Source: Takakia lepidozioides
Taxonomy: Eukaryota > Plantae > Bryophyta
Reading direction: 5' to 3'
Assembly: GCA_030704615.1 (NCBI GenBank)
Contig: CM060732.1
Span: 39,060,001-39,124,000 of the forward strand
DNA: 64,000 bases
Below the pieces are notes generated by a model. It did not search any database. It saw nothing but the letters and a program-made list of their open reading frames with translations, and was not told where the DNA came from. A program made the translations under genes and the position numbers. Below are positions 2,047-47,261 of the stretch, piece by piece (the first letter of the stretch is position 1; each line of letters starts with the position of its first letter).

Positions 2047-2067
2047 GTCCCATGTCTTTCATTTCTT

Positions 2068-10200: not shown

Positions 10201-10350
10201 AACTGTGTAATGTTGTGACTGACTGTATAAGCCTGTCTCCCACCCCCAAGGCCTGTGCTAGTCCAAGTCTATCATCCGTAAGTCTGTGCAAAAATTAAGG
10301 GTACCCCACAGAACCCATAAAAGTGTCTAAGTCCAGACAGCCCTCTAACA
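4221..10350 (-). mobile_element. Ty3/gypsy LTR retrotransposon copy 2 (decayed): LTR-PBS-ORF0-gag-protease-RT-RNase H, truncated before integrase
   Basis: LTR 9336-10350; gag 8729 to about 6750; protease VLIDGGSGVNIM (5903-6754); RT WLSPIVIVPKKNGKLRVCV, MPFGLCNAPATFQR, VFLDDF; RNase H VHCDASGEALGAVLAQ...NYSTTEREAL...FYVDHQ. It has multiple stops and frameshifts. Confidence 0.93.
9336..10350 (-). repeat. 5' LTR of retroelement copy 2
   Basis: TGTTAGAGGG...CTCAACA ends, an adjacent PBS, and a longer GGCTGTG microsatellite at 9985-10230. Confidence 0.85.
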
Positions 10351-20292: not shown

Positions 20293-22544
20293 ACTTGAAT
20301 CCATCAAACAACCTTCAAAAGAGGTGGAAAAAGAATAGACGGTAGAATGTCATGGCAGGGCCATGCTTTCGGCACAACAGAGCTGGAAACAGTGGAAGGC
20401 AGGACAAGAAGAAAGAAGGTGGGGCCCAACCATCCCCCAAGGCTCACTTCAGAAGTGAGATTTTTTTAAGCTGTTCTGATTTCCGTACAATAGATTTTCA
20501 TCAGTTTGTTTCAAAATGTTCACTGCACCATGAAAGAAAGAAAGAAATTCTACACTATCCATGGGAAGCTAAGAGAGTTTATAGGACAAAGGAAGTTGGA
20601 TACAAGGACAGTGGGGCCCACTACAAGCAGCCCAAAAACTACACTGGAACTTCAAGAAATTCCTTAAGGTAGAGGCATCTTCTGATCCTTGCAAAGAAAC
20701 ACATCTGTGTCAGATTGGCTATAGCTACATAGGTAGTAGTAGTGGGACAGTGAGAAAAGAAATGCTCAGTCTCCATCTCCTGAAGCCAGGCAGAGTTGTC
20801 CAGCATGCTGTACCTATCCCATCTCCTAGTCTCTATCCTCATACTTTGTAAGCCCACATTAGGAGATGGAGAGAGAGGCACAATCCAATACTTAGGCCAT
20901 AAGATTCTATCCTTGGGAGAAGAAGGAAGGCAAATTGATAGAGCTGCAGTTATGTGGTAAGGGGAGTCAGTGATTTCTCAGTTATCTCCCGCTGACATGG
21001 AGTTGAAACTCATGTCTAATGAGTCACAGGGGGGGAGCCCTCTTTGATCTCAACTTCCCCCCACCAGGTACAAACTTCTCAGCTCCAGGGTCATGACACC
21101 TCTTTGCTCTCAAGTTCCGCCCACAAACTCCTCCATTACCATCTCCACCATTTGCACTTCAGGTTTGAATGCATGAGGTACCTTACTTATGGAAGGACCC
21201 ATAACTTTCCTTTGGAGGGATGACGACTTGTGCAAAATCTGACCGTATACAACTCCAAGTAGGACCCTTAAGTATGCCCTGAGTTTACCTACAACTCCTC
21301 ATATATGGCCATCTGAGAACCCTAAACTAGCTGACAGAGGGAGACGAGAGAGTGTGTGAATGCAAACATGTGGCCTAAGGGGCAAAGCACTCCGCATTGC
21401 ATGTACTGCAATACTGGGTGTCATAAACTGGGCCGTCGAAATACCTACCCGGTACAGCAGCCGAAACTAATTGCGGGCCCATTAATGCATCTAAAGAGCA
21501 GGTAATGGAACCCTTTACGCTGAATTAATTATCGCCTAAACGGTTGTCCAGGGATAGTAGGCCCCAAGGGATTCAACGCTCAATTCTTGTGGACCTGAGC
21601 ATGTTTTGAGTTTATGAATGAAAAGGTGGCCAGAGGTGCAGATATTCCAGTCAAGGGTAAGAAAAGCTCGACTGAGAGCATCCCCATTCTACGCCTCTAT
21701 GGACCCCTGCACCCGTACTTCTCGTATACAGGTTCAAAATCACCGCCAAATGTACCACACCCTTGCCCCCCTACCATATACGCCGTTCAGGGCGGGCACT
21801 GAACCGCCTCTCTTTCACCGAATCCGTGCACAATATTCAGTCCCTGAAATAACCCAGAGATGAGGGGCAATGAAAGAAGCTTTGTACTAAGCATGTCCCA
21901 CAGCTCAGAATGAAAAGATGTGCTAAAATGAATGTGTCAGGCTTGGCGGTTCCCAGAGCTGCATGATGTATTATTTCTCTAGCATTGCCCAGAGACGGCC
22001 AGTGAAATCATTACATTGTGTAGAGTGGCCCATGCTACTGGGGCCACTTGAAGATGTTCACGTCTTTCTTGATGTGTTACTAACTCCTCTCTACCTCCAT
22101 CTCCACCCAATGGAGTATGGCTTAAATGTCCATAAATAAAATAACCCTCACTGTTACAATGCAAATACATTTGCCCCTCAACTCAAGAACTACGGACCTT
22201 GGCGCGCAGTGCCAGGCCGTTCCTAAACGCCCGGCGGGGCGTCCGCGCGACGTAGTTTTCTAACGCAGGAGAACCTGCGTTATGCAGATGGAAGTGCGTT
22301 CCTTGAAAGCTGCAACCTGTTAGGGCGCCACCAATGTGGGAAGGCGCCATGAGAGCAAGAAAATGAGGAAATAACATTATACTGACGTCACCCTTTGCCT
22401 TGTTGGATCTTAACAACCAATACATGCTGTTGAAACTGGGTCCCACCAAGGAGCCACCAAGGAAGGATGGGGCTTGTGTGGCCGCTCCCCTTGCAACGTT
22501 GGGAAGGAAGACATTGTTTTTCAACGTGCGTCCTGGCTATCAGC

Positions 22545-23168
22545 CTCTGAATTTTGTGTGGCCTCATCGTAATGAGGCCGCACCGTGCAGAGGGGACAGG
22601 GACTTGAGAGCGGGCCTGCTACATTAAAACGATCCCAATTCCTCTGGTTCTCTTATATATAAACAAAACTACGATTTGTTGGCAAGGTGGAGGTTGTGGT
22701 CTGGTAGTAGTAGGTCGGAGATGTAGCGATGTAGGTATTGGGTTCCATTCCCTGAACGTGGTTCCGGTGGCAGGCACTGACTACAACTACCTCCTCCGTC
22801 CACGTATGTAACTACTCTCATGCAGCTAGTTTCAGCTTGGTTGTGCAACTACCTTCATGTAGAAAATCCTAAAACTACCTGCATAGAGGTAGTTGTAAAT
22901 TTCATAGCTGTTTCAGCTTGGTTTTGCAACTACCCTCATGTAGAAAATCCTAAAACTACCTTCATGAAGGTAGTTGTAAATTTCATATGCTGTTTCAGCT
23001 CGGTTTTGCATCCACCTTCATGTAGAAAGTCCTAAAATTACCTGCATGGAGGTAGTTGTAAATCTCATATGCCAAAAAAATTCTTAGTCCTCGACGCACG
23101 AAGGTAGTTTGCTCCTATATTAATGCTCTGACCAGCCTCATTATGACGAGGCCACACAAAATTCCGAG
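22545..23168. mobile_element. Non-autonomous mini TIR element related to the 29.4-38.8 kb Mutator-like element
   Basis: Its inverted ends CTC.GAATTTTGTGTGGCCTC.TC.TAATGAGG match the large element's TIR core. Internally there are three ~81-bp repeats carrying AACTACCT-N6-AGGTAGTT dyads. No TSD was identified. Confidence 0.7.
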
Positions 23169-23883
23169 CCCATCATTATCTGTCGTAAAAACCTTCTGAT
23201 TATTTGGCTTTCTTCCCTGACAGGAATTTTCCCTCGCACGTGATTACAGGTTTTTGTCCCGGGACGGGGCTGTAATCCCAGATTATGGAATCTGTCCCCC
23301 CATTCTTTATGGATCTATTTTGGGCAGACGATTTTCAAACTTGGGCAGCGATCTACAATGACGTGACAATGAAACCCTAGTGGCAACGCAGAGGAGAAAC
23401 GGGCAGTCTCGAAAACGGGCAGATTCGTTTTCAACGAAAGGTAAAGCCCTCGCCCTTGGACTTTCCGGGATTTTCGACCCCTGGCCTCGGGCTCCGGTCA
23501 TTTTAGTGACTAAAATGAAATAAATAAATACAAGGGTTGGTCATTTTAGTCTGTGAAGAGACTCGTGAATCCCGGGTATGACAGGAGGATGACGAGAACG
23601 ATGACGGCGGTACTCTTGTGCTGCCCGACCGGCGGCCTCTTCAAATGGATAACGACAATTGTGTCGGACTCTCGGAGGTAACGGTGAGAGCATTGATGAT
23701 GTTGACGAGACTGGGAGTATTGAGGATGTCACTAGGCTACCGACAGATTGCGTTGTTTCGTGAATGCACTGCGTACTGACTGCACGGCACTCGTGTTTCT
23801 TATGGGCGATAGCACAGGAAATTTGGAGAGGACAGTCAAGTGTGAGGCGTCAGGCTGCAGGTGCCTGACAGAAGCTAGCGTCC

Positions 23884-25065
23884 ATGAAGGTGGCTGTGGC
23901 ACTATCCTTTTTGTTGGGATGGACACGGTTGCAGCTGGCTATGGCGGGGACGTTGGAAACGGGCAGCCTGCTGCAGACGCCCTTACTGGTACGCATGGCA
24001 GACACAGCGCTGGAGATCTGGAACTCGTCGGGGCCTGGAGGTGAGGTGTGGAATTACGAGCGCGGCGTGCTGCTGTATGGCATGGAGGCGGTGTGGCGGA
24101 GGACAGGTGACGACAAGTACTTGCGGTTCATACAGCGCAGAACGGATGCGTTCGTGTCGGAGATTGGATCCATTCCGAGCTACAAGCTCAAGGAATACAG
24201 CCTCGACAACATTCGGTCGGGCGTGAATCTGCTGTTTCTGTACAAGCAGACGGGATTGGAGAGGTATCGCAAGGCCGCAGATTTGTTGCGAGAGCAGCTG
24301 AGAACTCATCCGCGGTTGTCTGAAGGTGGGTACTGGCACAAGCTCATCTATCCTTACCAGATGTGGCTGGATGGTCTGTTCATGGCGGAGCCTTTCCGCG
24401 CTGAGTACGCATTGACATTCAACGAGCCGGAGGAGTTCGAGGACATTGCGATGCAGTTCATCTGGATGGAGAAGGACGCACGCGACAGCAAGACGGGGCT
24501 GCTCTACCACGGATACGATGAATCCAGGCAGCAGGCCTGGGCCGATCCCGTGACGGGCAGATCGCCGATCTTCTGGGGCCGCGCTTTGGGATGGTATGCC
24601 ATGGCCATTGTGGATACCTTGGACTTCTTCCCCGAGGATCATCCCAGGCGACTCGACCTCGTCAAGATCCTGCAGCGCCTTGCTGTGGCGATCAAGGACG
24701 TGCAGGATCCTGAGTCGGCCCTCTGGTGGCAGGTTCTGGATCAAGGTGGGCGGGCGGGGAATTACCTGGAATCGTCTGCATCTTGTATGTTCGTGTACGC
24801 CCTGGCCAAAGGTGTGCGCAAGGGATACTTGTCACCTCGCTATCTCCTCGTCTCCGAGAACGGTTTCAAGGGAATCAAGTCGGAGTTTATTGAGGCAAGG
24901 TCGGATGGAGGTGTCAATCTCACCCAGACAGTTACTGGGACAGGACTTGGAGGAAATCCTTACCACAATGGAACGTATCAGTACTACATCAGTGTGAAGG
25001 TGGCGACCAACGATGCTAAAGGTGTTGGCCCGTTCCTGCTGGCCAGCACCGAGCTGTCGCGATGA
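23884..25065 (+). CDS. Secreted glycoside hydrolase family 105 (unsaturated rhamnogalacturonyl hydrolase, YteR/YesR-like), intronless
   Basis: Intact 393-aa ORF with an N-terminal signal-like segment. Motifs: WNYERGVLL, SLDNIRSG, GGYWHK..YPYQMWLDGLFMA, TGLLYHGYDES, FWGRALGWYAMA, GNYLESSASCMFVYALAKG. Confidence 0.92.
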   Translation: MKVAVALSFLLGWTRLQLAMAGTLETGSLLQTPLLVRMADTALEIWNSSGPGGEVWNYERGVLLYGMEAVWRRTGDDKYLRFIQRRTDAFVSEIGSIPSYKLKEYSLDNIRSGVNLLFLYKQTGLERYRKAADLLREQLRTHPRLSEGGYWHKLIYPYQMWLDGLFMAEPFRAEYALTFNEPEEFEDIAMQFIWMEKDARDSKTGLLYHGYDESRQQAWADPVTGRSPIFWGRALGWYAMAIVDTLDFFPEDHPRRLDLVKILQRLAVAIKDVQDPESALWWQVLDQGGRAGNYLESSASCMFVYALAKGVRKGYLSPRYLLVSENGFKGIKSEFIEARSDGGVNLTQTVTGTGLGGNPYHNGTYQYYISVKVATNDAKGVGPFLLASTELSR

Positions 25066-27588: not shown

Positions 27589-28170
27589 CTAAGAGATAAT
27601 CTGGATGGCAGCATTTGAGCCCAGAATAATCTCGGTGGCGTTAACCGCTCCATCCAACTGAGCTGTCGATGAGTGGTCAATTACTTGCATAAGTTCCCGC
27701 TTAGACATATTATCGAGGTGCAAAGAGTACAATTCCATATTCTTGAAAGCAATGTACAGCGAGATTGTTAGTCCCACACAGAGCATGGCCGCTGTGATTG
27801 CGAGGCGGTACTGTTCTGGTGCTGGCACGATTGCCAAACCGGCACTTACGAATCCTAATGCACACCACAAAAGCGAGAAGTACACCAACGATCGGATCAG
27901 CAGCCGGGGTCTGAGAAGGCTTGAAGGCATCAACTCCTGTGGAGGGAACCCAACAGCATGTATACACAACGCAAGACCCCAAACTGAGGAGCTGAAGGAA
28001 ATGAAAACGTAGAGAAGAAAGCAAATAAGTTGCGGGCTTGTAGTCCGAGCGAAGCCTTGTGAGTCGAATGAGCCTGGTGGCTGAAGAAAGCCAGAGAATG
28101 AGACACCGATCAGCATCGCCAGAGCTGCACCATACATGCCCAGTTCGAATGCTTCTCCATTCTGACTCAT
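27589..28170 (-). CDS. PGG-domain-like four-transmembrane protein, single exon
   Basis: AALAMLIGVSFSGFLQPPGSFD resembles the PGG signature and is followed by three more hydrophobic helices. ATG is at 28170 and the frame is intact. Confidence 0.6.
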   Translation of the reverse strand: MSQNGEAFELGMYGAALAMLIGVSFSGFLQPPGSFDSQGFARTTSPQLICFLLYVFISFSSSVWGLALCIHAVGFPPQELMPSSLLRPRLLIRSLVYFSLLWCALGFVSAGLAIVPAPEQYRLAITAAMLCVGLTISLYIAFKNMELYSLHLDNMSKRELMQVIDHSSTAQLDGAVNATEIILGSNAAIQIIS

Positions 28171-29480
28171 TGTGAGGACCCCCAACACTCCGTGCTCAAT
28201 CCCACTCAGTCCAGAGTCTCAACTCTCAACTCACTCTCTCCCCCCCAGGTACAACCCACCACTGATACTGCTTCTGTTGTTGTGGTGGCCGACCTCCACT
28301 GCGCACAGATCTTAATGTGTGCAGCTTGTAAGCTGCTCTGAGAATACCACAAGAGCGAGTTGTATTTGAAGTCAATTTCAAGGAGCTTTGTGGGCCACCC
28401 TCATTTCGTAAAGGATTTTGGGGGGCAGATTCTCCCTTTTTTGAGGCAAATTAAAATGCAGAAGATCGACGCTCCACGGCGCTGGCGCATTCTGTAAGGG
28501 GGGGGTGACTGAGCAGCAGCAGCTCGGCTTCACCTTTCGTAAAAGACGAAGCTGTCCGTTTTCGATGTTTAAAAGTTGAATCCGGAACCGGACCCGTCTC
28601 GCTTGGTTTGCGATTTCTTTTGTCCGGGCCATGATCTGCATGGCAGGCAGCAGCATTCTTGCGCTTTAATTAGAGGGGGGAGGGTGGGGCCCTCGATCTC
28701 CACTCTCCCTAGCGGCTGATTGTTGGCATTGATCTGCTGTGTTGCACTAGTTGCACTGATCTAGGGGGAGTGACTGCACGTTTCTCCTCTGCGTTGCCAC
28801 TAGGGATTGTCACGTCATTGTAGCTCGCTGCAAGTTTGAAAATCGTCTGCCCAAAATAGATCCATAAAGAATGGGGGGACAGATTCCATAGTCTGGGAAT
28901 ACAGCCCCCGTCCCGGGACAAAAACCTGTAATCACGTGCGAGGGAAAATTCCTGTCAGGGAAGCCCTAATTTTAACAAAGCCAAAAAATCTGAAGGTTTT
29001 TACGCAATCCTAATGGGCAGTTTGACTGCCATAATCGGCTGTTTGACTTTTAGTGGCTCATTATGGCCTGCAGCCAATCAGGGCCTCGCAGAATCTGCCC
29101 CCGAAATTCCTTTAGGCCAGGGAAGGCCCCCCTAGGGTGAGTCACTAGGGCGAGGCCGATAGTACGTTGAAGGCAGGTGTAGCATATTCTGCCACTTTTG
29201 AGACTGATTCTCAGACCGAATTGGCAGTGGCACAGAGGACGGCAGAGAGCCCGCCCGCCCGTACACATTCCCACCCTTTGTGGCTCGCCCCGTTTATATC
29301 CTCTCAGGGCCCTGAATCTGGGCAATCGGTATGGATAATTGACCCGCAATCATATTGCACCAGGTGGCGGCGAGAGTACGCTACACCTGATTTTAGAGGG
29401 TCGTGTTTGGCCGACTCGCCTCAGAATTTTGTGGGCCTCGTCGTTATGAGGCCACACGCTGCAGAGGGGACAGCCCCTCC

Positions 29481-29709
29481 CAGCGTCCGGGAAATAATTT
29501 CAGTTGAACCAGCCAATGGCCCCTCATTCTGAGAACCAACCGGCTAAGTGGGTTGGGGAGTCTGGTTGCTTCCCCTTAATGGTAACTGCAATAGTCAATT
29601 TCCTATGTGAACATACTCGGTAAATTTTCGAAGGTTTCAATTTTCACTCCGAAATCCTCAGAATCAGTCGGCTAGCATGTAACTAGCTGCCGGTTCTCCC
29701 CCTTGGTTG
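29481..29709. mobile_element. 229-bp insertion (hAT-like, non-autonomous) in the left TIR
   Basis: It is absent from the right TIR and is flanked by an exact 8-bp direct repeat GCCCCTCC (29473-29480, 29710-29717). It has CA...TG ends and AACCGG-like internal motifs. Confidence 0.65.
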
Positions 29710-29766
29710 GCCCCTCCTATCACGGCCCGCACGCTTGGGCCCTTGACCTGCAGCCCCTGCCCGCCC

Positions 29767-29895
29767 CTAACCTCCTGCCCTAACCCCCAACTAACCTAAC
29801 CTAACCCCAATCTGACCTGACCCTCAACCCTAACCTGACCCAACCCTTAACCCTCACCCTAACCCGACCTTAATCTAACCCTCAACCCAACCCAT
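29767..29895 (+). repeat. Degenerate telomere-like (CCCTAA/CCTAA/CCTGA)n array in the left TIR
   Basis: The sequence reads ccctaacc...taacctaacctaacccc...ccctaacctgaccc. Confidence 0.85.
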
Positions 29896-30473
29896 AGTCC
29901 ATTTTTGAACCAGGGCTAGTTATCGTCTCTCTCTCTCGATCAACGTAGGCCTTGTGGACCGGCTTTGCTATCGAGTTTCAATAGCTTTCTCTTTCATGCA
30001 TCATCATCATCAGCTTCTATTAGTTCACATGAGGAAAGGAGGAGGAAAGGAGAAGGTGGAAGAGGAGGTGCAAAGAAGAACCACAAATACAAGGTTTTTC
30101 TTTTGTGTTGATAATTACTTGTAGATAGTGTGTTGACAACTTCTTGTAGATAGTCATTTTCATTCAATTTTAGGTTGGATCTTTGTTTCTCTTTCTCGCT
30201 TCTCACTCTCGTTCTCACTCTCACTCTTATTCATTTTCATAGTACAACCTAGATAGACATTTCATTTCAAGTTTACATTAATTTAAATTCTCTTTTGTCT
30301 CTTTTTCTATGGTTTTTCTTTTTATCTCCATCTCTCTCGCTCTCCATCTCTTTCTTTCTTTCTCTCTCTCTTTCACACAATAGCATTAGGAGGATTTTAT
30401 AGATTTGTTACTAATCTAGCTTCCATAATATGATTTCTTCTCAATTTTTAGAATAAACACGGCAATAAAAGGC

Positions 30474-32842
30474 ATGGACTACGAGCCTCTGAGCTCCAGT
30501 AAGCTCTAAATATCTTTCATTGCATTGAGGATGTAGTTGCGGAATCTGGCAGAACGATTTGAAGTACAAAATCCTACTTCTAAAATGTTTAGGTTTGGGG
30601 ATTTGAAATGGATTCCACAAACACGGTGGGGAGGTGGAAAGAATGTGAACTGTATTATTGCGTATATTCCATGGGACCGCGTGGAGGATTTTACTGAAGG
30701 AGAGAAACAACACCCACATGCCCCCTACAAATTTCACACTTTACAAGAGTCGGAAAGGAGATCCAAATCTGTCAGTTCCCAATGACGACAGTTTCATTAC
30801 CCACAAATGGTATGTTACTTAATCTTATGTATTTGAGTGTTTTTTTCTATGATGCATTGTTTGTACCTTATCTTTTATCTAGTACCATAATGGAAATTAG
30901 TTGAATAATAAGTGGATGATCAAACTATAGGTACCAATGTGTGTGGGGCACACGACATTACCATCAAAAGCCATTGTCACCCAAAATTCCAAATCGCAAG
31001 AAACGAAGAGACAAAAGTGCGCTTGGCGAAACATCTAATCGCGTTCTCTCTACAAGTTCTCAGTCAAACAACTATTCTTGTATCCATCAATTGCGGAGGT
31101 GACATTTTATCATTGGGACCATATAGTTGCGGAAGGCAATCCTAGCCATGGGGTTTTGGATCATCGGTCAGTTAACCGACCATCTCAATTCGCTTCATTC
31201 ATTTCAGAGGATCTAAAGCAATGGATAAAGACAAGGCTTGATTGTGGTGATACCCCTCGGCATATCTTCAATGAGCACAAAAAACGATGGTCTGAGAAGA
31301 AAGAGGTGGGTGGTCTAATAATCAGAGACGACTTCCTCAAAATGTATGATGTTCTAAACATTGCAAGGATACGGACAACTGAGACTTACAAGCGTCAAGA
31401 TGATCCAGCACAAAGTGTGCACATGTAGGTATTGGAATTTTCTTCACTATGTATTTTTTTACGAACAACAGCCTCAAGTGGGAGGATTACCGTTCACACT
31501 CGGAATACAAACAAGCTACCAAAAACATAAAATGTTGGAGTGGGGACATGAATGATTGGTTTCGTGCGATGCCACATTTGGCACAAATAATCAAAAGTTC
31601 CAATTGTTCACTCTGTTGGTATTTGATAAACATTTCAATGGTGTGCCTGTAGCATGGATAGTCACAAGCAGAGGACAAGCAAATGATCTTGTGCAGTGGA
31701 TGACAGCACTTTAGGCTTACATAAAAGATTCTGATCCACATTGGTTACCTTCATCTTTCATTGTTGATGACACAGATGCAGAGATCAATGCTATAAGGTA
31801 TATTTAATTCTCTTACTTGCTCTTACAATTTGTTTTCAACATGTTTATTGTGCATGTTCACATGTTGTGGTTTGTACTTAGAGTGAAATGATGAATATTA
31901 ATTTTGTTAAGATTTTTTGATGATTGCAGGAAAATGTGGGGGCCATCTATGCCCATTTTTCTCTGTTTGTGGCATGTTCAGAAGACATGGATGAAGAATG
32001 CTTGTAGTAAGGTGGGAAATATTGTTGTCCGCAGTGCACTATTGGAGGGTCTTCGTCACATTATGTATATGTCATCCTTGTCAAACGGAAGTCCCAAAGA
32101 CATCGAGATCAGAGCAACTAACAGTGTGAATGCATTATTCATGAAGTACCCTACCGAGAGGGTTTTCGAGCAACATTTCCGTAGGGAATGGCGTTCCAAA
32201 ACAAAAATGTGGGTGACCAGTATTCGAAAAGGTCCACATGCTGGTTAAGAAACCAATGCAGCCATTGAGGCTTTACCATGGTAATTTAAAGTCTCGACTA
32301 TCTGAGTCGAAAAAAACTATGAAGGGCATGAGAGTGGATTGGCTTATATACGAATCGGTGGGCGATGTTGCAAGACATTATTTATACATGGACCACATGA
32401 AGACCAATGGGTTTGTGACTAATTCCAAAGCAGAATTGTTGATTGAAAGTTCCGTTGTGAGAGCAAGCAATATACTTGACTCCGATGTTGTGTATTCCAT
32501 CAAGGGATGGAGAGCCTTTTCACGTACGAAGCACTCAACATCCTTTCACAAAGTTCCATCAAGTATATAATCCCATAGGTGAATGGGCATGTTGCACATG
32601 CGATTGGGCATTGCGGGGCAACTTGTGTAAACACCAAATTAAGGTTATACAACTGATAAAAAACATCCTTGGTACTCAATTTGTGCAAATTTGTGGTGCC
32701 GAGTTGGGAGCTACTTGGAGCGGTCTTCATGCCTTATTTGAAGACACCAACAACTCACACCACACAGAACTCATGCTGGAAGATGGGTTGCATCAAGGTA
32801 AACACCCATTCCTTATTTATGTACATCTTATATTTTTGTAAG

Positions 32843-32884
<42 letters not shown>

Positions 32885-33344
32885 ATCTACATCTATAATG
32901 AAACAACTATAAGCAAAGTGTATTTCTTATAATATATCCATGTGGGTTAATATAATGTTATTTTCGTTTGTTATGGCATACAGACGAAGCTTCCCCAATT
33001 GACAACCTACCTTCCTGTCAAAACACTTGTGATACTCTGAAGTCTGATATGCGATCTATTGCCAAAACAATGGAAGACGTCATTCATACTATGGAAGGGG
33101 CTAGTCCACAATTGGTTGGTCATACTCTGGCTATGGTGTAAGCAGTGTATGGTAAGTGCGATCGCTGAAGAGTTTAGCAGAAGAAGACATGATGCATCCT
33201 TCTCAAGCCTTTCAAAAAATCGACGATAATGGTGACAACTCCATTCGCCGAAAGAAAGATTTCTTGGAACGTAGTAAAGGTTGGAAGCGCACGAAAACAT
33301 CCGGAAATGACACTATGCATGTTAGTCTAGCCCATAGTTCATGA
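30474..33344 (+). pseudogene. Mutator-type DDE transposase with SWIM zinc finger, intron-containing, with multiple stops and frameshifts
   Basis: Motifs: VQNP, IPWDRVEDF..GE, SHG..D, ISEDLK, RDDFL, PFTLGIQT, SCDATFGTN (D1), VPVAWIV, FIVDD (D2), FLCLWHV (CxxH), ETNAAIEA.YHG (E), RVDWLI, CTCDWALRGNLCKH (SWIM). From recall it resembles the Arabidopsis At4g13970/At1g60560 family. Confidence 0.88.
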
Positions 33345-33519
33345 AAACATTGAGCAACGAAGAATGTCTATATGGATTTCCTGCTATATTATAAAATGTG
33401 AAGCCCCGAGGTCGCTTTTTTGTTGATGCCAATAAACAAACACTAAATTATACTTCGGTCAAGCTTCAAAACCCATAAACTTCATGGAAAATGGTTGATT
33501 TCTTGACAATATCTTGAAT

Positions 33520-35380
33520 CTCATACTACCTACGTGAAGGTAATTCTTCAAAGATAGTTTGGCATTAAGCAATAGTGAGTGTTGTTGGAAATAGGGCACT
33601 ACCCACATGCAGGTAGGCCCAAAGTTCTGGAAAATTGGGGGGTGTCAAACTACCTACGTGTGGGTAGCCCAGAAAAGACCTCTCTAAGTTGTTGGAAATA
33701 AGGCACTACCCACGTGCAAGTAGTCCCAAAGTCTCTGGAATATTTACCTATTCCTGACTACCTTTGTGTAGGTAATTCAGAAAAGACCCTTTCTAAGTTG
33801 GAAATAAGGTCAGTACCCACTTGTAGGTAGTCCGAAAGCCTTTGGTACATTTAGGTGTGCCCAAGTACCTACGTGTAGGTAGTCAAGAAAAGACCTCTCA
33901 AATTTCTTGAAAATAAAGTCAGTACATACCTAGTAGTCGGAAATGACCACCCTAACAACTCGCCAGTCCCTACCCACTACCTGCACGTGAGTAGTGACAT
34001 TTCCAACAACTTACGGAAGGCCATTCTCAGACTACGTGAAGGTAGATTTTCAAAGGATTTTTAAAGTAAACGTAGTTCCAACATTGTTAAATACATTGCA
34101 AGTTCGGGACTACCTGCACAAGGGTAGTGCGTTTATTTCCAACTTAGGAGAGGGTCTTTTTTCGGACTACCTGCACGTAGGTAGTTGCGTGGGTAGTGCC
34201 TTTATTTGCAACTTATGGGAAGAGTACTTTTTTCCGACTACCTGCACGTAGGTAGTTTGGTGTACAATTTTTTTCCCTACCTGCACATGGGTAGTGCCTT
34301 CATTTCCAACTTAGGGGAGAGTTCTTTTAAGGACTACCTGCACTTAGGTAGTTTGGTATACAAAATTTTTCTAACAAGTTGGGGACTACCTACACGTGGG
34401 TAGTGCCTTCATTTCCAACGTAGGGGAGAGTTCTTTTTCGGCCTACCTGCACGTAGGTAGTTTGGTGTACTAAAATTTCCAGCAAGTTGGGGACTACCTG
34501 CATGTGGGTAGTGCCTTCATTTCCAACTTAGGGGAGAGTTCTTTTTCGGACTACCTGCACCTAGGTAGTTTGGTGTACTAAAATTTTCCAGCAAGTTGGG
34601 GACTACTTGCACGTGGGTAGTGCCTTCATTTCGAACTTAGGGGAGAGTTCTTTTTAAGGACTACCTGCACATAGGTAGTTTAGTGTAGAAATTTTTTCCA
34701 GCAAGTTCGGGACTACCTGCACGTGGGTAGTGTCTTCATTTTGAACTTAGGGGAGACTTTTTTTTAAGGACTACCTGCACATAGGTAGTTTGGGGTAGTC
34801 ATTTTTTCCAGCAAGTTCGGGACTACCTGCACGTGGATAGCGCCTTGATTTCCAACTTAGGAGAGGGGACTTTTTAAGGACTACCTGCACGTAGGTAGTT
34901 TGGGGTAGTCAAGTTTTCCAGCAAGTTCGGGACTACCTGCACGTGGGTAGTGCCTTGATTTCCAACTTAGGAGATGGGACTTTTTAAGGACTGCCTGCAC
35001 GTAGGTAGTTTGGGGTAGTCAAGTTTTCCAGCAAGTTCGGGACTACCTGCACGTGGGTAGTGCCTTTATTTCCAACTTAGGAGAGGGGACTTTTTCTGGA
35101 CTACCAGCACGTAGGTAGTTTGGGGTAGTCAAGTTTTCCAGCAAGTTGGGAACTACCTGCATGTGGGTAGTGCCTTTATTTCCAACTTAGGAGAGGGGAC
35201 TTTTTCTGGACTACCAGCACATAGGTAGTTTGGGGTAGTCAAGTTTTCCAGCAAGTTGGGGACTACCTGCACGTGGGTAGTGCCTTTATTTCCAACTAAG
35301 AGAGGTCTTTTTCGGACTACCTACACGTAGGTAGTTTGGTATAGATCATTCAGGGACTACTCACACTAGCTAGTTTGGTA
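33520..35380. repeat. Internal tandem array with a 110-bp unit containing two ACTACC-N8-GGTAGT dyads; the left part is inverted
   Basis: GACTACCTGCACGTGGGTAG recurs at 34601, 34711, 34821, 34931, 35041, 35151 and 35261. The stretch 33520-33960 holds reverse-complement units (GTTGGAAATAAGGCACTACCCACGTGC). Confidence 0.92.
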
Positions 35381-35705
35381 TAGCTCAATAATCTTAAATC
35401 TTTGTAATGACTAGGTAGTGATATAATTTCCAATGACTTGAGTCTTGAGGAAGGTAGTTTCATAAAAGAAATGATAAATGGGTAATGGACCGAATGTGAT
35501 ACCCTTCATGACGACCATGTAGGTACTCTTGTGAAGCCCCATAAACCAGAAGACAGAGTGTGCATTAATGAGTGGGCTATGATGCATGTAGGTAGTATTG
35601 AGTGAATGTCCAACTATCTTTCTGAATGGGTCAATACACAAGAAAAAATTGAAATGTCTTGGAATTTTTATACATGTAACGTATCGGTACAACTGCCTTG
35701 CACAT

Positions 35706-37322
35706 TTATCCCCTAGTTCTCCTAGTAAGAAGGCGAGCCCCTATGCCATCACCCATGTTCGCAAAATATTGAGATTCAGAAGTAAATCCCATCGATTCGA
35801 GTTGTTCACAAGTGGGTGTTACTCCCGTATGAGGTCGTGTACTTAGTGAGGTGACACGAGCATGGGCACGATCACGTCCACGACCTCGACCTCGACCTCG
35901 ACTAGTAGAAGCAATATGATCTTCCACTATTTGGACTGCACCATCCTCATGGGCGGTTTCATGTTCCTCAGAATAACAACTGAGAATGTCCACAGGAGAA
36001 TTCTCATAGATGGAAGGAGTTGGAATAACCTCACTTTCGTCCACGTTCTTCTCCAACTGTGAGACGGAGTCAATTGTAGAAACTTGGACATCGACCATCA
36101 TTTCTTGGCTTTGTGAGGCTGAACCGTGCTCATGAATAGGAGACGATGCAGGATTTTCCTCATTATAGACAACAAGACCCGTTGAAGTGGATGGGAGATT
36201 GCCTGTACATTCATCCCGTGTATCTGAAGCATATCAATCGTGAGGACATGACCATCACTTGTCTTATCTGGACTCCTCTCCGGACAAATAAATAGATCCA
36301 CATCTTCACCATTCGGACCACATCCACCATGGACATGCGTTGCATGTGAACAAGTCAATGAATGCAAACCTTCATCATTCGGATCGTCATATCCATCATC
36401 GTGCACCTCATTGTCGGAAATCTCTTCACTTGAGTCAGATACAGGCAATCCATGTTTGAGCCTGTATGTCCTTGTTGCCACATTACTTTGTTCCACGCGC
36501 ATGTTCTCCTTCAGTTTCCAAGTCGCCATGGCTTTCGACACATAAGAAGCCATGAAGTCGTCCTTGCTTTGTTCCCATCTACAAGAAACATGTGTACATT
36601 TGTGACTTTGAAGCAAACAAAGAAACATATACATACAAACAAGACGCCAAACATATACAATCAATTAAATCAAACAAAAACATACTCGTACCTCCAACGC
36701 ACACTTTGTTGATCATGATACTCCAAAGCCAAATCCAGTTGCTGAATGCGAGTCTCCAAACCACTGTCCCACCCACTCTTTGTCCATGTTTTCCTCATGT
36801 CTGCCTGTTCAGCTTTGGAGTAGTTGTTGGTTTTCAATTTCTTGAAAAGACCCAACACATACTCCCGGGTGTTGTGGTCATTTAATTTGCGGAGATCTCG
36901 CAACTCTCCATCTCCCCAACAGTTGATACATGTAGCAGCATACATGTCCACGTCCAAAACCTCCGCAAGTAACGGTTTACGGATCCACTCAGGCATAGGG
37001 GCCCAAACCTGTGGTTTCTTTGTCATACAGTTCTTTGCCGCAATTTTGTATCTATGTCGTGCCTTACTTTGGGCATTGGCCAACCGTTTGTGAGGATTAG
37101 AGAAAGTGCGCTTGCGCTTTCATATGGTCTATTCATTCGAATCTGTGGCCTTCCAGATTTGCCAGTTGCCATTACCAACCCATGACCCTCCCTCATCATA
37201 TGCATATTAAGCCCCGCTTTCCTACTATACCCCACTTTTGGGCCTTTCTGGCATAATAGACACTTGTAGAATCCGGATGAGACGTCTTGTTCATAGTGCA
37301 CGCCTTCTGTTGTCGTGTTCAT
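35706..37322 (-). pseudogene. Accessory gene of the Mutator-like element: N-terminal C2H2-like zinc finger, helical middle, acidic and RG-rich tail
   Basis: The ATG follows a TTTCTAG acceptor and the protein includes YKCLLCQK...LNMHMMREGH. ORFs 37023-37322, 36670-37083, 36098-36578 and 35706-36101 link through frameshifts and a GT-AG intron at about 36692-36579. RGRGRGRG lies near the C-terminus. Confidence 0.6.
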
Positions 37323-37762
37323 TCTAGAAATTGAAAAGAAGACATAACAATTATACTAATCACAAGCCCATAAGCTATATCTTAGAGATGATCATTCTAA
37401 ACCCATATTTATCATAAGCCAAGGGAGGGTCAGGACCCCACAACACCTTTTAAAAGGGAAGAATCGGTAGCCATCATTTCACTCTCTTATAGATGACAGA
37501 ATGAGAAGTAACACAAGTTAAAGCCTTGAGTTGGTACCCTCACTAGATGGTCATCTTCTAGATAGTTTGTCCATCTGTATCTACTTAGAGAAGCTTCATG
37601 CCGTGATTAGGACATAGGTTCCACTAGAAGGCTCCACTTGAATTTGTCGAAGAATTCCAGCCCTTGCTTTCCTAGGATTAAGGACCTACTCTAAAATGTG
37701 TGAGAGAAAGAGAAAGAGAGAAAGAGAGATTCAATTTAAAGTTGAATTAAAATGAATGAGTA

Positions 37763-37765
<3 letters not shown>

Positions 37766-37800
<35 letters not shown>

Positions 37801-37820
37801 TGTGTGTGTGTGTGTGTGTG
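37766..37820 (+). repeat. (GA)n(TG)n microsatellite
   Basis: Read directly from the sequence. Confidence 0.9.
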
Positions 37821-38094
37821 CATGTGTGAGAGAGAAAGAGAGTATTTACAAGTAGGTAGTCAACAAAAACAAAAACAAAAAGATCATGAAATCACCTTGT
37901 ATTTGTGGTTGTTGTTTCCTTCTCTCCTTCCACCTCCTCTGTCACCTCCTCTGCCACCTCTTGTGCACTAATAGCTGCTGAAAGGTACTGGAACTCGAAA
38001 GCCGGAAGCAAAGCTCGTCGCCGTTGAGGAGCGCGAGCACGAAATTGAAATTAGGGATTTCAATTTTTTGACTAACCGTAATTAAAAATGGACT

Positions 38095-38285
38095 ATGGGT
38101 TAGTTGAGGGTTAGGTTAGGGTTTCAGTTTGGTTAGGTCAGGTCGGGTTAGGGTGAGGGGTAGGTTAGGTTGGGCTTGGGTCAGGTCGGGTTGGGTCAGG
38201 TTAGGGTTGAGGGTCAGGTCAGATTGGGGTTAGGTTAGGTTAGTTGGGGGTTAGGCCAGGAGGGTCTCGGGCAGAAGGTTAGGGG
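38095..38285 (+). repeat. Degenerate telomere-like (TTAGGG/TTAGG/TCAGG)n array in the right TIR
   Basis: The sequence reads gggttagttgagggttaggttaggg...gggttagggtgaggg, mirroring 29767-29895. Confidence 0.85.
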
Positions 38286-38439
38286 CGGGCAGGAATGAGG
38301 AGGGGCTGCAGGTCAAGGGCCCCAAGCGTGCGGGGCCCGTGACAGGAGGGGCTGTCACCTCTGCAGCGTGTGGCCTCATAACGACGAGGCCACACAAAAT
38401 TCTGAGCGGCCAACCCTGTGCGCGGCCATAGGGCTCGGC

Positions 38440-38719
38440 CTGACGGTCCCAATGTTTTTTTTTTCAAATTTGGAAAAGAACAGGAGTGGCTACTGAGTTT
38501 TGCAAGAAATAGCCATATTTTCTGCTCATCCACTGAAATTTGGACAGAATCATCCTCCTCTGTACTTTCATCCATATTAGGCGAATCATCCAAGATTTAT
38601 ATTTTGTTTTGAGACTTTTGGCGATTTTATCCATGAGAAAATAAGGAATTTACGACAGAATATTCGATTTTGATTTTTGAGGTCGAAAAAGTGCAAAATT
38701 TCGCCAGAAATAAACACTA
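38440..38719. mobile_element. Probable MITE in the outer right TIR
   Basis: It has imperfect inverted ends CAATGTTTTTTT / AAATAAACACTA and an AT-rich interior that interrupts GC-rich TIR sequence. The TSD is only loosely matched. Confidence 0.4.
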
Positions 38720-39042
38720 ACGGGCTCGCCCAAAGGCAGCTTACAGAGCCGAATCGGCCAATCACGTCCCGTTCTCTAGTAATAAGGCCCATGACACACG
38801 AGCGGTAGGAAATTGTCGCGTTTTAAATATCAAAGGCTAGGAGTTTTGCCTATATATAGGTCCACATCAACCTACATCAACGATAAAATCTTGGCTGGCT
38901 ACCACACGGGAAAGATAGAAGGATGCCATACCACTTCTAGACTTAAGTGGAAGAACGAGTTGCATAGCAATAAAAGATTTAATAGTTTATCTTTATATTT
39001 TAATCATTTTTAAGTTATTTTTAGTATTCATCTTTTTAGTCA

Positions 39043-39445: not shown

Positions 39446-40004
39446 AGATCTATCACACAACATTCAGTCTCATTTTCATATTCTAAACATCTACAGATCG
39501 GACATGTAACAATCTGATTATAAGTATTTCAATATATTTTTTTCTTTCTACTGTAATTAATTAAGAGAGATGGACTATAGGCAACATTGTCAATAATTGC
39601 GGAAGATGTACAGATCTGTTGGAAGAGGCTAAGCGAGATCATGAGAGACTTGAAAACTTTAAAAGAAAAGAATATTTCCTAAGGGAAATAGAAAAAAATA
39701 TAAAGTACTATAATAAATGTATCAACTTAGGTCAAATATACTATTTATTGGTATGTACCGACAAAATTGGTAGGTTGTCATCATTTATTATAATTAAAAC
39801 AAAACTTTATTTTCGATAAACGTTCATATATCCATTTGTAATGCACTAACATCCTTTTTTGAAATAAACCTTGACGTGTTAGTACCTATGTTAAAAATAG
39901 AAAAATAATAAGATATTATTTATAATTGCCCTTAGGAGTCCTAAAGGGGGGGGGATGGAAATATGTAAATTATTATTTATAATTGCCCTTAGGACTGCTT
40001 AGGA

Positions 40005-40985
40005 AACAGCTACACAGACAGTTAACCAAGCCTTCCGCCCCTCAGTCAACAGATCTTGGTAAATATTGAATAATACCGATTTGCCCCTGCGGGGTTTTCC
40101 CTCATAAACCCAAGCACATCTTGTTTTCCATAAGTTCCACAAAGTAAGCGTTCTAAGAGCAGCCTAAACCGGGCAGACTGACCCCCATTGAAATTCAGAA
40201 ACAACAGAGAAGGTGGGGGGGGGGGAGAGAGGGGAAGCTATTCCAGCGGGAGTAGAAACCAAGAACCAAGTGCCAGACTCTAAGAGCCAGATTGCAGAAT
40301 ATCAGGCAGTGTTCAATGGATTCGGGAGAAGAACCGCACAGAGAGCAGTTAGGGTTGTCTTCGTAGAATTCTATGCGCGATTTTGCATAGAAAACCGGAT
40401 AGCCTGGCTGGTCTGTTTTTTCTCCAGATTTTGTCCCATCCATGGTGGTCTAGCAGCGAGATGTTCCATTTTGCTTTCCACTTGAACTCAAACGAAAGGA
40501 GGGGGGTTAAAAAAGAGGGTATCCCTTTTTCACAGAGTACGCAAAGAAAGGGGTCTTATCCATCCATCTTATCTTATCCATCCATCTCACTCCCTGGGAT
40601 CGAATTGCAGGTCCACCAGTGGGCAGCTCAAAAACCAGGTGAGGTTTTCTTGCCTTGCCCATTGGGTCTCCATGCCTTGCGGGAGCGGCGGGTTTGGGTT
40701 GCCCAGATTATCCAGAACTCTGATGTGAAAAAGTCCGCTTTATCTGCTTCCATTCTTCTTTGATACTGAAGAAGACCTTTCTCATCTGCAGAAAATCCCA
40801 AACCTGTTGCTCTAACACCTTGGCAGGTTGTGACCAGCATGACAGGGGTCTGAATCTGTTGACTGGTGGCCATCCAAGTGGGTATCTTTATGACCAATAC
40901 ATCGGCTAGGAGAGATTCCATGTACTGAGGCACATTTGCCAGAATGGTGTCCCGGGTTTTAGCTCTTATGTGCCCAACCATGGTG
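40005..40985 (-). mobile_element. L1-like LINE ORF2 3' remnant
   Basis: A zf-RVT-type CSLCGSSPESIEHCLIFC...VW motif and a downstream ELWKTRC motif, both degenerate. Confidence 0.7.
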
Positions 40986-42110: not shown

Positions 42111-42409
42111 AGGTACAGTCTAAAAAGAATGAATGAAAAATAAAATAATTGGATGAAAACATAATGAAAAGTTGATATTTATTAACCTTATCCAACACAC
42201 TTTTTGAATAATAACTAACAAGGTTTATTTAAAAATGGATGTCGGTGCATTACAAATAGCTGTATGAATGTTTATCGAAGACAAAATCTTGTTTTAATTG
42301 TAATAAATGTGTCACCTACAAATCTTGTCGGTACATACCAAGAAATAGTATATGTGATTCTTAAATGTAATGGTCAAAGTTGATATATTTATTATAGTAT
42401 ATATATGTA

Positions 42410-43520
42410 TATTTCCCTTAGGACTCCTTAGGACCGCCCTAAGGAGTCTTAATGACAATTATAAATAACAAAATACATCTTTCTATTTTCCCCCTCTTAG
42501 GAGACTATTATAAATAATAATTTACATCTTTCAATTTTCTCCTTCTCAAGGTTTCTTAGGGCAATTATAGATAATAATTTATATGTTTCTATTTTTCCCC
42601 TCTTATAACCTCTTAGGTTGCCTAAACGGGTCTTAAAGGAAATTATTTATGTCTTTCCATTTTTCTCATCTTATGACTCCTCAGGACTGTCCTATGAAGC
42701 CCTAAGGGTAATTATATATAAGAATTTATACGTTTTTTATTTTTCACTATCTTAGGACTCCTTAGGGCTGCCTGAGGAGTCCTAAGGGCAATTATAAATA
42801 ATAATTTATACGTTTCTATTTTCCCCCTCTTATAACCCCTTAGGCTGCCTAAACGGGTCTTAATTTTTCTCCTCTTAGGACTCCTTATGACTGTCTAAGA
42901 AGCCCTAAGGATAATTATAAATAATAATTTACATGTTTTCATTTTTCCCTCTCTTAGGACTCCTTAGGGCCGCCCTAAGGAGTCCTAAGGGAAATTATAA
43001 TAATAATTTATATATTTCCATTTTCCCCTCTTAGGACTCCTTAGGGCAGTCCTAAGGAGTCCTAAGGGCAATTATTGATAATAATTATATGTTCCATTTT
43101 TTCCCTCTCATAAATCCTTAGGTTGTCTAAACGGGTCTTAAGGGCAATTATTTATGTCTTTCCATTTTTCTCCTCTTAGGACTCCTTAGGACTACCCTAA
43201 GAAGTCCTAAGGGTAATTATAAATAATAATTTATATGTTTTTATTTACCTATAATTTATATATTTCCATTTTCCCCTCTTAGGACTCCTTATGGCAGTCC
43301 TAAGGAGTCCTAAGGGCAATTATAGATAATAATTTACATGTTTCCATTTCTCCCCTCTTATAACCCTTTAGGCTACCTAAACGGGTCTTAAGGGCAAATA
43401 TTTATGTCTTTCCATTTTTTTCCTCTTAGGACTCCTTAGGAGTGTCCTAAGAAGTTCTAAGGGTAATTATAAATAATAATATATATGTTTTCATTTCCCC
43501 CCACTTATGACTCCTTAAGG
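42410..43520. repeat. Palindromic minisatellite (unit ~75 bp) with CTTAGGACTCCTTAGG-N5-CCTAAGGAGTCCTAAG dyads
   Basis: There is a perfect dyad at about 43030-43066 and many degenerate copies. Reverse-oriented units occur at 39890-40005. Confidence 0.85.
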
Positions 43521-44729
43521 CCGCCCCAGAACTTCGGAGCAGCGAGGGAGGAAATTGCTTCAAGACTTCCATGACACCTGGGGCAAAAACAACATGCCCG
43601 GCGCCGATATTTCCAACTCTAAATTCACTTGGCAACATTCCATCCCCTCTCAATGGGAGATCACCTGGTGACGGTTATGAGGGAGATTGCAACTGGCGCC
43701 ATAAACGTGCTAGAGCCCCCAAATTCCGCGCGCAGCTTAAGTTCTAGAAGTCTGGCATCTGCATTAGCCTCTTCGACAGTTCTGAGTTGCATCACCCTCA
43801 AAATCTACTTCCACCATCCCCTGACATCCCTTGCTGGTTTCAAGTCTTTTTCAAGACTTAGCTCATTATTTTTTCCTGGCATTGTCTACTTCTCTACAGT
43901 GAATCCCTGCGTCTAATCTCCCCCCACCCTACCACATCTCTCTTGGTCCCCCGCACCACTCTCTCGACCCCTCCCTCTCAAAGTCATCTCTTTGGGTTAC
44001 CTTGCTCCTTTCCCTTAGCATGTTCGCTATGGTTCCGGGGAAGTTCCCCCTCAGTAAGCCTCACGGCCTCCCCCGGGTCGTTATTTCTTCCACCCCTGTG
44101 TAACTCTTTCTTATTAATTTGATCAACAGGGCTTCTGTCCATTTTCTTAAAAATAAAAATAATTTAAAATAATTATAATCAGAATTATATATATAATATA
44201 AATAAGTATATGAAAAACAAATATTTATATTATATTAAATAAATGAATTTAATAATAAATAAATATATTGTAAAATCTAGCTATAATCTAACAACTTCGC
44301 TACATAAATCAACTATCATTCTATCTATCAACCAGTCAATTATCGTTCCATCCATTATCATAAATAAATCATTATCAGTTACAATCATGTGTTATTTTTA
44401 CTTACTAAATAATTATTTATTCATATCACTTTATATCTTATCACTAAATTTTCATATTTAAAATTTAGAATTTAGAATATTTATATAAATTTAATTAAAA
44501 TAACTAAAATTATAATACATTTATTTATTTAAACATAATGATTATATATTATAAACATAAAAATATTATCAATGAAAAACTTCAAATATTTTAAATATAC
44601 TATTTATATTAACGAATTTATTTAACGCATAATAGATACATACTATGTATGTATATATATATAAATACTTTAAATATAAATCAATATATACTATATACTA
44701 TATTATACTATATTATATCAAATAGCAAT

Positions 44730-45280
44730 ATAGTTTATTCTGTTTTCTTGCTCTAAGTAATGCTTATACTTAGAGCGAATGTAAATAGCAATTTATCTTT
44801 TTTTATTTTCTTACTCTAAGTAATACCTAGATCGAATGTAAATAGCAAATTAGTTTTTTCTGTTTTTCCACTCTAAAAAACCCCTAGAGCGGCTCTAACG
44901 GATTCTTAGAGCGAATATAAATAGCAATTTAGTTTTTTCTGTTTTCCCGCTGTATGAAATCCTTAGAGTGGCTTAGAGCGGCTATAAGGGATCCTTAGAA
45001 CGAACGTAAATAGCAGTTTAGCTTGTTCTATTTTCCCAATCTAACAATCCTTACATTGGCTCTAAGGATATTAAGGGATCGTTAGAATAAATGTAAAAAA
45101 TATGTTAAGGTTTACCTTCTTCATCATGGTTGACCCATTTGTTTTCCCGCTCTATGAAATCCTTACAAGCTTAGAATCCTTACAACGAACGTAAATAGTA
45201 AATTAGTTTTTTTTATGTTTCCAATTTAAGAGATCCTTACATTGGCTCTAAGGGATCATTAGAATAAATGTAAACAATAT
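44730..45280. repeat. Second palindromic minisatellite (CTCTAAG...CTTAGAG dyads plus a GAATGTAAATAGCAA spacer)
   Basis: Repeated units of roughly 60-75 bp lie upstream of the Harbinger ORF. Confidence 0.7.
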
Positions 45281-45598
45281 GTTAGGGTTTTTCTTCTTGG
45301 TCATGGTTGACTCTTGAGGCCGTATGAGATTTAACTCTTCCTCCCCTTCAATAATTCAACTATTAACAATATAGTTATTTGGTTTAAAATAATGTGATTT
45401 TTTGGCTAAAATATATTAGGGTTTAGCCACAACTTGTCAACGTGGCCTTCTGTCAACAAAAACTTGGCACTAGCTGGCATCCTAAAGAAGCGGCAACGGC
45501 AATGGTTTCCCACCATAATCCAAATCGCTCCTGTTTTCTAGGAAGAAGAGAAGCCTTACGTTCGGTTTTTTTCACCCAGCCAAGTCCATGCACAGAGC

Positions 45599-46343
45599 AT
45601 GAGAGAGAGTCTGTGTACAGACAATCTTCTATGCATTGACTTCACTTCATTTGTTATGGATTCAGGTAGGAGAGCGTTGTTTGTTGCATTGGCAAAGCAG
45701 ATGGCATTACTCTATGTCATGGAAATCATTTCATCTTGGAACGAGGCGTTCACGATGGATCATCTTGAAAAGGTCGCTACGTTGTTGCTGTGTTATCAAA
45801 CGTGGACACTTTCAAGAAACAGTCGTCTACGGCCAAAATCGTACTGGGCTCGGGAAAGGAACTTGTCATTTGTAGATTCTAGTTTACTGGGATCATTCAC
45901 TGCATATGAATTTAAAAACAGGATGCGAATGTCTAGAGCTACTTTTGAATTCATCTGTGCCAAACTTGCTCCAATGCTGCACAAACGTGACACCAATATG
46001 AGAAGAGCGGTACCTGTGGAAACAAGGGTAGCTATCTCCATTGCTCGGTTGGCTGCTGGAAGTGGGATGCATATGATTGCAGATCTCTATGGGGTAGGTT
46101 TATCAACCAGCCAGAAGATTGTGGTGGATTTTCTTAAAGCACTCAAATCGATTTTACTGAATGCTTATATCAAATGGCCATCTACCGCAATGATGCAGCA
46201 AATTTCAAAAGAGATTGAAAATATTTATGGCATCCCTTTTGTTGTGGGAGCAGTCTATGGTTCCCACATTCCAATCATCCCACCACGTGATCATGCTGCT
46301 GATTATTACAACAGAAAGCAATTTTACTACAGGGTGTTGCTTT
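45599..46343 (+). pseudogene. PIF/Harbinger transposase, truncated, with the first catalytic Asp changed to Tyr
   Basis: Motifs FKNRMRMSRATFEFIC, AVPVETRVAI, IADLYGVGLST, VVGAVYGSHIPI (normally GA.DG.HI) and DYYNRKQFY, after which homology ends. Confidence 0.88.
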
Positions 46344-47261
46344 GTCTTGCCGCTTAATAAGGGCTGCATTTCCCACCCCCCTCTACAATCTCTTCTTCAC
46401 TTCAAGCTCTCCCTCCTTGCTCGACCCCCTCAGCCCCCTCTCTTCGGCATTCATCTCTTCCAAGTTTGGATACGAAGACCTCGAGCAACACGTTTCCATT
46501 CACAGAGTGAATCGTTGATGGTATTCATCTATGAGAGAGAGAGAGAGAGATTGCGCTGCGCGAGAGGGCGAATGCGATGAGGTGGAGAGAAAAGACGGAG
46601 GTACTAGAATTGCGCATTGGAAAGGGTTGGTAGGATGAATTCATGTGGCTCGGGGACGCTTTGATGCACATTAGAAGGCCTGATGTAGGGCATTGGAGAA
46701 GCTATTGAGGGGAGTAAGGTATCCGTAGTAGTCATGGAGAAAATATCAGTGTCGATGTCGATACGAGTACGGCCTGCCTCTGAGCAAGCAGGAGCACATG
46801 GGAGTCCGTGGAAACTTGAACAAGACTCAGTTGCTCTTTGCAATGCCTCCGGGTACCCTGTATCCGGCCAGTCGTACAAATTCGGTATGCGTTCTTCCCA
46901 TATGTCTTGGTTCTGTAATGTTTGTAGCTCCTTGTCGACGATGCTGCAGTTAGGCGTGGCCAATGTTTTGCGATACCTAGTCTCTCCGAGGGATTTGGCC
47001 TTCTGTGAATGTCCGTTTACCACTGGCTGCTATCAACATGAGAAAATATCCTGGTTGGAGACTACTCTAATGTAGACGAAGTTGCCCATGAGCGGCCAAC
47101 GCCGACCACAGCACATTTAGCAGTGGAATGAAGAGACCCGCAGCAGTTTCAAAGAGAGATTCACATAGCACGTCAAAGCTAGACAAAGAAACACTAAGCA
47201 CAATGTGCTTTGTTTGCCTGTTTAAAACGACATCAGACAGCCTAATCGAGGCACCATCAAA

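Follow-up and report, generated by a model that had tools for sequence, protein, structure and literature searches.

A decayed Mutator-type transposon of MuDR-like layout with long mirrored ends and a central dyad array in Takakia lepidozioides

Maize MuDR carries two convergent genes, mudrA and mudrB, which are read from promoters located in its terminal inverted repeats (TIRs), and both transcripts stop in the region between the 3' ends of the genes (PMC3440606, PMC8224964). In the Arabidopsis elements VANDAL21 and VANDAL6, a Mutator-type transposon (MULE) is combined with an extra gene, encoding VANC, and with a short motif multiplied in non-coding tandem repeats; it has been shown that the targets of VANC were amplified as such repeats (PMC5735166). 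The transposase of AtMu1 is a sequence-specific activator (10.64898/2026.08.24.746577). Among other MULEs, Mutyl (mutA/mutB) of Yarrowia and Spectre carry an additional ORF or one of C2H2 type (PMC6446971, PMC5014426), and the fold-back MULE Muta1 possesses repeats inside long TIRs and a palindromic terminal motif (PMC5225508). The TIRs of plant MULEs reach 1.5 kb (PMC12973397), and tandem TIRs have also been described (PMC3310237).

Extra ORFs, antisense accessory genes, TIRs of up to 1.5 kb, TIR repeats and tandem TIRs are already known in MULEs, and so is the general design of two convergent genes, TIR promoters and motif arrays. To our knowledge, few transposon-encoded sequence-specific regulators have been characterised: VANC, TnpA and the AtMu1 transposase. 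Here we describe a locus of Takakia lepidozioides with likenesses to several of these systems. The window, that is the whole 64-kb stretch of DNA analysed, was scanned throughout, and the regions 21.5-24.5 kb and 28.5-49.5 kb were re-read.

Extent and genes of the element

The segment 29418-38407 is a decayed copy of a MULE, 9.0 kb long. It possesses long terminal inverted repeats and encodes a DDE transposase with a CxxH motif and a zinc finger; of dispersed copies with common termini, one gene-less relative is present in the 64-kb window. Taken as a whole, the locus is probably explained by a once-autonomous MULE of MuDR-type layout whose insertion split the left arm of another, small and unrelated element.

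The ends at 29418 and 38407 match both ends of the gene-less family member, which spans ~630 bp (22543-23170) and is 87-91% identical to the MULE ends, so that the family end is fixed independently. Immediately outside the ends predicted from this relative lies a candidate 9-bp target duplication, the left copy of which (29409-29417, +) agrees with 38408-38416 at 7 of 9 positions. Both mismatches are transitions, and the pair is the best among the end pairs scanned, though GGCC may be repeated within the host arm itself. The relative has no clear target duplication at 22543-23170.

A larger extent, 29398-38770, had been proposed originally and proved wrong, as the outer ends belong to a separate host element of ~380 bp that was split by the MULE. 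The outermost 20 bp (29398-29417 against 38751-38770) form an inverted match of 17/20 (0/500 shuffles), and their homology resumes in register from 38408 onwards, with an anchored score of 38 against 16.2+/-5.5 (1/2000 shuffles; 1/3761 window positions). From 29418 onwards the same anchored test gave 423/2000 shuffles, and the homology does not continue there. The continuation at 38408 is weak, and in an unanchored local test it was not significant (79/500). As the outer match is resumed on the far side of the MULE rather than at 29418, the MULE appears to sit within the left arm of the host element. We therefore regard 29398-29417 as the left tip of the host element, not as a MULE end, and 38408-38770 as its remainder, the first 9 bp of which are the right copy of the candidate duplication. 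Self-comparison found no partner of 38408-38750 to the left of the MULE.

Two independent neighbouring family elements lying tail to tail could mimic a single one, or the true unit could be the larger 29398-38770 composite. The outer 20-bp inverted match is indeed real and the candidate 9-bp duplication is imperfect, as such explanations would have it. We nevertheless consider both very unlikely: the locus contains just two family termini, both facing inward, with the 9-bp near-duplication outside them, and the MULE interrupts the outer arm of the supposed composite in register, and no duplication accompanies that arm itself. The prediction of one two-gene element with one TIR pair is thus supported by the sequence, with inward termini and both genes between them.

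These genes form a convergent pair, as had been predicted, with a MULE/SWIM transposase on the forward strand and a C2H2-like gene, here called gene B, on the reverse strand. Both are pseudogenes in this copy. The transposase pseudogene (30531-33344, +; ~790 codons) is divided by introns at 30810-30930, 31798-31929 and 32798-32983, and contains at least five internal stops (31426, 31553, 31712, 32246, 33139) and, read by eye, about six frameshifts. The D, D, CxxH and E motifs are located at 31565, 31760, 31964 and 32258. A catalytic piece of 52 aa matched the Pfam families ZSWIM1-3_RNaseH-like (6.9e-6) and MULE (7.9e-5), both just below the cut-off, and a C-terminal piece matched SWIM above the cut-off (5.6e-4). 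The pieces may follow Arabidopsis SWIM proteins of the At1g60560/At4g13970 type along their length; the best Pfam match of the transposase is ZSWIM1-3_RNaseH-like. Protein and locus searches with the coding pieces, queried separately and hence at lowered sensitivity, returned no relatives.

Gene B (35706-37322, -; ~500 codons) has an intron at 36579-36691 and frameshifts near 37120 and 36230. It encodes a C2H2-like finger, a core predicted to be helical and a tail that is acidic and rich in RG, and its start codon, ATG 37322, is in frame with the finger. The C2H2-like pattern of the finger includes an insert of four residues, is unusually spaced and has no Pfam match. No Pfam relative was found for gene B as a whole (four pieces, E up to 1). 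An exhaustive search of 1.84 billion representatives with the 149-aa core gave two matches, both repetitive and spurious on inspection, and a length-limited database search with the core gave none. Matches in the Atlas were at 0.90 or lower, with low recognition and no relative among them, and neither the PDB nor viral contigs yielded a match. The core was the piece searched exhaustively, the other pieces of gene B being searched in Pfam and PDB only; pieces were queried separately, which lowers sensitivity. A single-sequence AlphaFold model of the core was all helix with a pLDDT of 42, too poor for a fold search. Since the transposase pieces likewise matched nothing, transposon proteins of an unannotated genome may be absent from the collections searched.

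The convergent arrangement of a transposase and an accessory gene within one pair of long TIRs is that of MuDR, with a comparable region between the 3' ends (PMC3440606, PMC8224964). No homology of gene B to mudrB was found, its 149-aa core being without any relative in the databases searched and its other pieces without one in Pfam and PDB. Judged from its sequence, the element works like MuDR in its layout, and MuDR-type here refers to layout alone. Membership of gene B in the VANC family was considered and rejected, as it contains neither DUF1985 nor DUF287 (Pfam, four pieces, E up to 1; domains from PMC5735166). Mutyl and Spectre differ from the present element in having short TIRs (22 and 74 bp), no described array and fungal or insect hosts, and no sequence link between them and this element was found.

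The mirrored ends

An inverted homology of about 700 bp had been noticed between the two ends. It is real, and longer than first described, with a left arm of ~1.07 kb and a right arm of ~1.12 kb. Self-comparison recovered it as the outer pairs 29420-29480/38345-38406 (97%) and 29710-29893/38145-38352 and the inner pairs 30010-30095/37894-37981 and 30429-30484/37291-37346. From the outside inward the mirror comprises the terminus, a degenerate telomere-like microsatellite, a putative first exon, an intron, an acceptor and 11 first codons. Substitution identity is 97-98% over the outermost 260 aligned bases and drops to 75-80% towards the inside, as expected if the outer parts had been homogenised.

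The left terminal segment (29418-29480, +) is identical to 38345-38407 at 60 of 62 positions and has the same end as the element at 22543. It is followed by 229 bp present in the left arm only (29481-29709), located between 8-bp direct repeats, which reflect either an insertion in the left arm or a deletion in the right; no other copy of this segment exists in the 64-kb window. The left inner TIR (29710-29906, +) includes a CCCTAA-like microsatellite (29771-29893) and shows 6 substitutions in 196 aligned bases relative to 38084-38352. The right TIR (38084-38407, -) likewise consists of the terminus and a degenerate telomere-like microsatellite, and is the inverted match to the left arm. Telomere-like arrays had been predicted here and are present, in the form of degenerate 5-6-mers with four perfect CCCTAA per arm and never two in tandem. 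True telomeric repeats at the termini can be ruled out, as the repeats are internal (150-350 bp from the ends) and without two tandem perfect hexamers.

Inward of the microsatellites follow putative 5' non-coding exons, at 29907-30093 (+) for the transposase gene and at 37896-38083 (-) for gene B. The former, purine-rich in its 3' part, mirrors 37896-38050 (114/177 columns, 0/500 shuffles); the latter has no sense-strand ATG. As was noted at first, the donor context is the same on both sides: GT at 30094 (+) and at 37895 (-) is preceded by a 17-bp exact mirror run that stops at the GT and is the longest exact run in the otherwise 75% identical region of the purine-rich segment. Such a run is as expected if selection had kept both donors, or after recent conversion. 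The left donor context, GTTTTT, is weak. The putative first introns are both GT..AG and measure 358 bp on the transposase side (30094-30451, +), where the sequence is CT-rich and its 3' end homologous to the right-hand intron, and 572 bp in gene B (37324-37895, -).

The AG acceptors end at 30451 (+) and 37324 (-), are homologous, and are followed by 11 homologous codons; the mirror through the acceptor and these codons covers 61/88 columns (0/500 shuffles). An acceptor just before the ATG of each gene had been predicted, and this holds for gene B, where it lies one base before ATG 37322, whereas on the transposase side the ATG has been lost. There the 11 codons homologous to the start of gene B (30452-30484, +), which mark the inner limit of the mirror, begin with ATA; of the ATGs that follow, that at 30474 opens 11 codons and that at 30531 a single codon. 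Beyond the start the homology ends, as a control gave 463/500 shuffles. No TATA box was found in either arm.

We propose that recombination or conversion between the ends copied the head of one gene, with its promoter, non-coding exon, intron, acceptor and start codons, across to the other end. Both genes would then have come under one common promoter, to be switched on together and read inward, ending near the array. The 11 codons are in frame with the finger of gene B and run into a stop upstream of the transposase domains; because of this, gene B was probably the source of the copied head, which would have become a leader at the transposase end. By analogy with the inward reading of MuDR, the TIRs are most likely the promoters of both genes. 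The TIRs of MuDR measure ~215 bp, whereas the mirror here reaches ~1.1 kb and includes a non-coding exon, an intron and start codons. A limited search of open-access text found no description of TIRs with a spliced gene head common to two different genes. The mirror would illustrate one route to a co-regulated second gene, by extension of a TIR across a whole gene head.

The central dyad array and its candidate binders

A palindromic array had been predicted in the centre of the element and was indeed found, as a fold-back of 1.8 kb between the stop codons at 33344 and 35706, with 31 copies of a 20-bp dyad, ACTACC-N8-GGTAGT. The left arm (33525-33883, -), which is older and inverted, contains 7 dyads in ~107-bp units, and the right arm (33976-35335, +) contains 24, its regular part being built of two-dyad units of 110 bp that are 82-97% alike. 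Dyad spacing alternates between 52 and 58 bp (34276-35262), about 5.0 and 5.5 helical turns.

The dyad is 2-3 times better conserved than the array spacers. Cells differing from the consensus make up 6.4% of the dyad columns against 14.5% of the spacers, and 15/40 dyad columns are variable against 46/69 spacer columns, with p about 0.005, an optimistic value as the units share history. Positions 9-10 of the dyad, which are not self-complementary, are invariant in 31/31 copies. The gene-less relative carries the same dyad in each of three 82-bp units (at 22874, 22955 and 23037), and the likeness of these to the 110-bp units is limited to the dyad plus a few bases. Spacing in the relative is 81-82 bp, so that the 52/58 phasing of the array is not conserved. 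Of the dyads in the window as a whole, 31 belong to the array and 3-4 to the relative, and 3 are stray weak matches; none occurs in the TIRs, introns or genes of the element, and those of the array lie 4.1-4.5 kb from either element end. The dyad therefore looks like a cis-acting site of the family, on the grounds of its conservation and of its retention, together with the same ends, in a different repeat unit of the gene-less relative.

MuDR carries short direct repeats, and the fold-back array here exceeds in size and regularity whatever we found described for that element. A dense, family-specific short motif in non-coding tandem repeats, seen here at the scale of the 64-kb window, is a feature of the VANDAL/VANC type. 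The VANC motif is an oriented one of 9 bp and its sites are located in introns, upstream regions and throughout the element, as opposed to a 20-bp dyad in one central block. Long TIRs are also present here, unlike in VANDALs, which are not known to possess them. The midpoint of the element (33912) nearly coincides with the inversion axis of the array (33929, ~33930), probably by chance, since the length of an array can change.

We propose that a dimeric protein encoded by the element bound the dyad as a site specific to the family, and that tandem duplication multiplied this site. The likeliest binder is gene B, at a little less than an even chance; a single C2H2-like finger, as it possesses, is a small DNA reader, which counts against it. 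Next among the proteins comes the transposase, as a lesser possibility, and that the dyad has no protein partner at all is a substantial one. Any purpose of the dyad and gene B in anti-silencing, transcription activation or help with integration is suggested by analogy only. Tentatively, and with less confidence than we place in the element as such, the locus could represent a distinct lineage with an independently evolved self-recognition module, in which an orphan finger protein binds an arrayed, family-specific dyad that non-autonomous copies have also retained, and in which the duplicated, spliced gene head of the TIRs co-regulates both genes; the anti-silencing or activation would then be of a kind other than VANC or TnpA.

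Binding of the dyad by the transposase itself, as a regulatory or synapsis site, would leave gene B as a MURB-like partner that binds the transposase and not DNA. MULE transposases recognise repeated motifs and can switch on copies of their own element (10.64898/2026.08.24.746577), MURB binds MURA (PMC12973397), and the gene-less relative retains ends and dyads, as a transposase substrate would. We consider this explanation rather unlikely, as the known sites of MULE transposases are located in TIRs or subterminal repeats (PMC5225508, PMC3440606), whereas the dyads here are far inside and absent from the TIRs, and as gene B carries a finger-like motif.

Slightly less probable still is an array that amplified itself as a palindromic satellite, or that acts as an RNA hairpin or terminator between convergent genes, with the dyad conserved by self-repair of the palindrome. 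Gene B would then be passive captured cargo, its promoter and first intron having been absorbed into the TIR. Read-through RNA over the array is predicted to form a strong long hairpin (z = -20.5), and because of this the array could also be a source of small RNAs or a transcription stop. Unrelated dyad arrays occur nearby (42386-43520), so that arrays of this sort may be common throughout the genome; the gene head resembles an ordinary plant promoter with a CT-rich intron, and MULEs are known to capture gene fragments (PMC6446971). The non-palindromic positions of the dyad are, however, invariant too, and an invariant non-pairing centre fits reading by a protein better than hairpin repair. 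Moreover, the same dyad stands in a different unit in the relative at 22543-23170, and gene B has no host-gene homologue among 1.8 billion representatives.

For gene B as the binder, a clean 20-bp dyad near an orphan finger protein offers a direct binding test. If binding were positive, this would be a third way in which a protein solves the same problem, and possibly a targeted epigenome tool.

Neighbouring features in the window

Both family members lie close to an inverted pair of 230 bp (23184-23408 and 28772-29004; 89%) that encloses 5.8 kb. The gene-less relative ends 13 bp before its left arm, and the full element starts ~400 bp past its right arm. Within the pair, a glycoside hydrolase gene at 23869-25062 (Pfam Glyco_hydro_88, 1.2e-106) is intact and lacks introns, and an ORF at 27592-28218 encodes a hydrophobic product with no Pfam match. 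The segment 23184-29004 is possibly a TIR element carrying the glycoside hydrolase gene; no clear target duplication was found at the inverted pair.

A second, unrelated array (39677-40007 and 42219-45311) consists of 77-80-bp units with a different dyad, of CCTTAGG core, and is partly inverted at 39677-40007. Beside it, the ORF 45542-46354 appears by eye to be a piece of a PIF/Harbinger transposase and has no Pfam match. A TIR-domain resistance-type gene (11005-18159, -) contains 17.5 copies of a 216-bp leucine-rich repeat unit that are 89% alike. A direct repeat of 3.5 kb (1-3575 and 6684-10352; 87%) surrounds Gypsy-like gag/pol pieces and probably represents long LTRs. A related 10-bp microsatellite is found again at 55227-55468, beside further retroelement ORFs.
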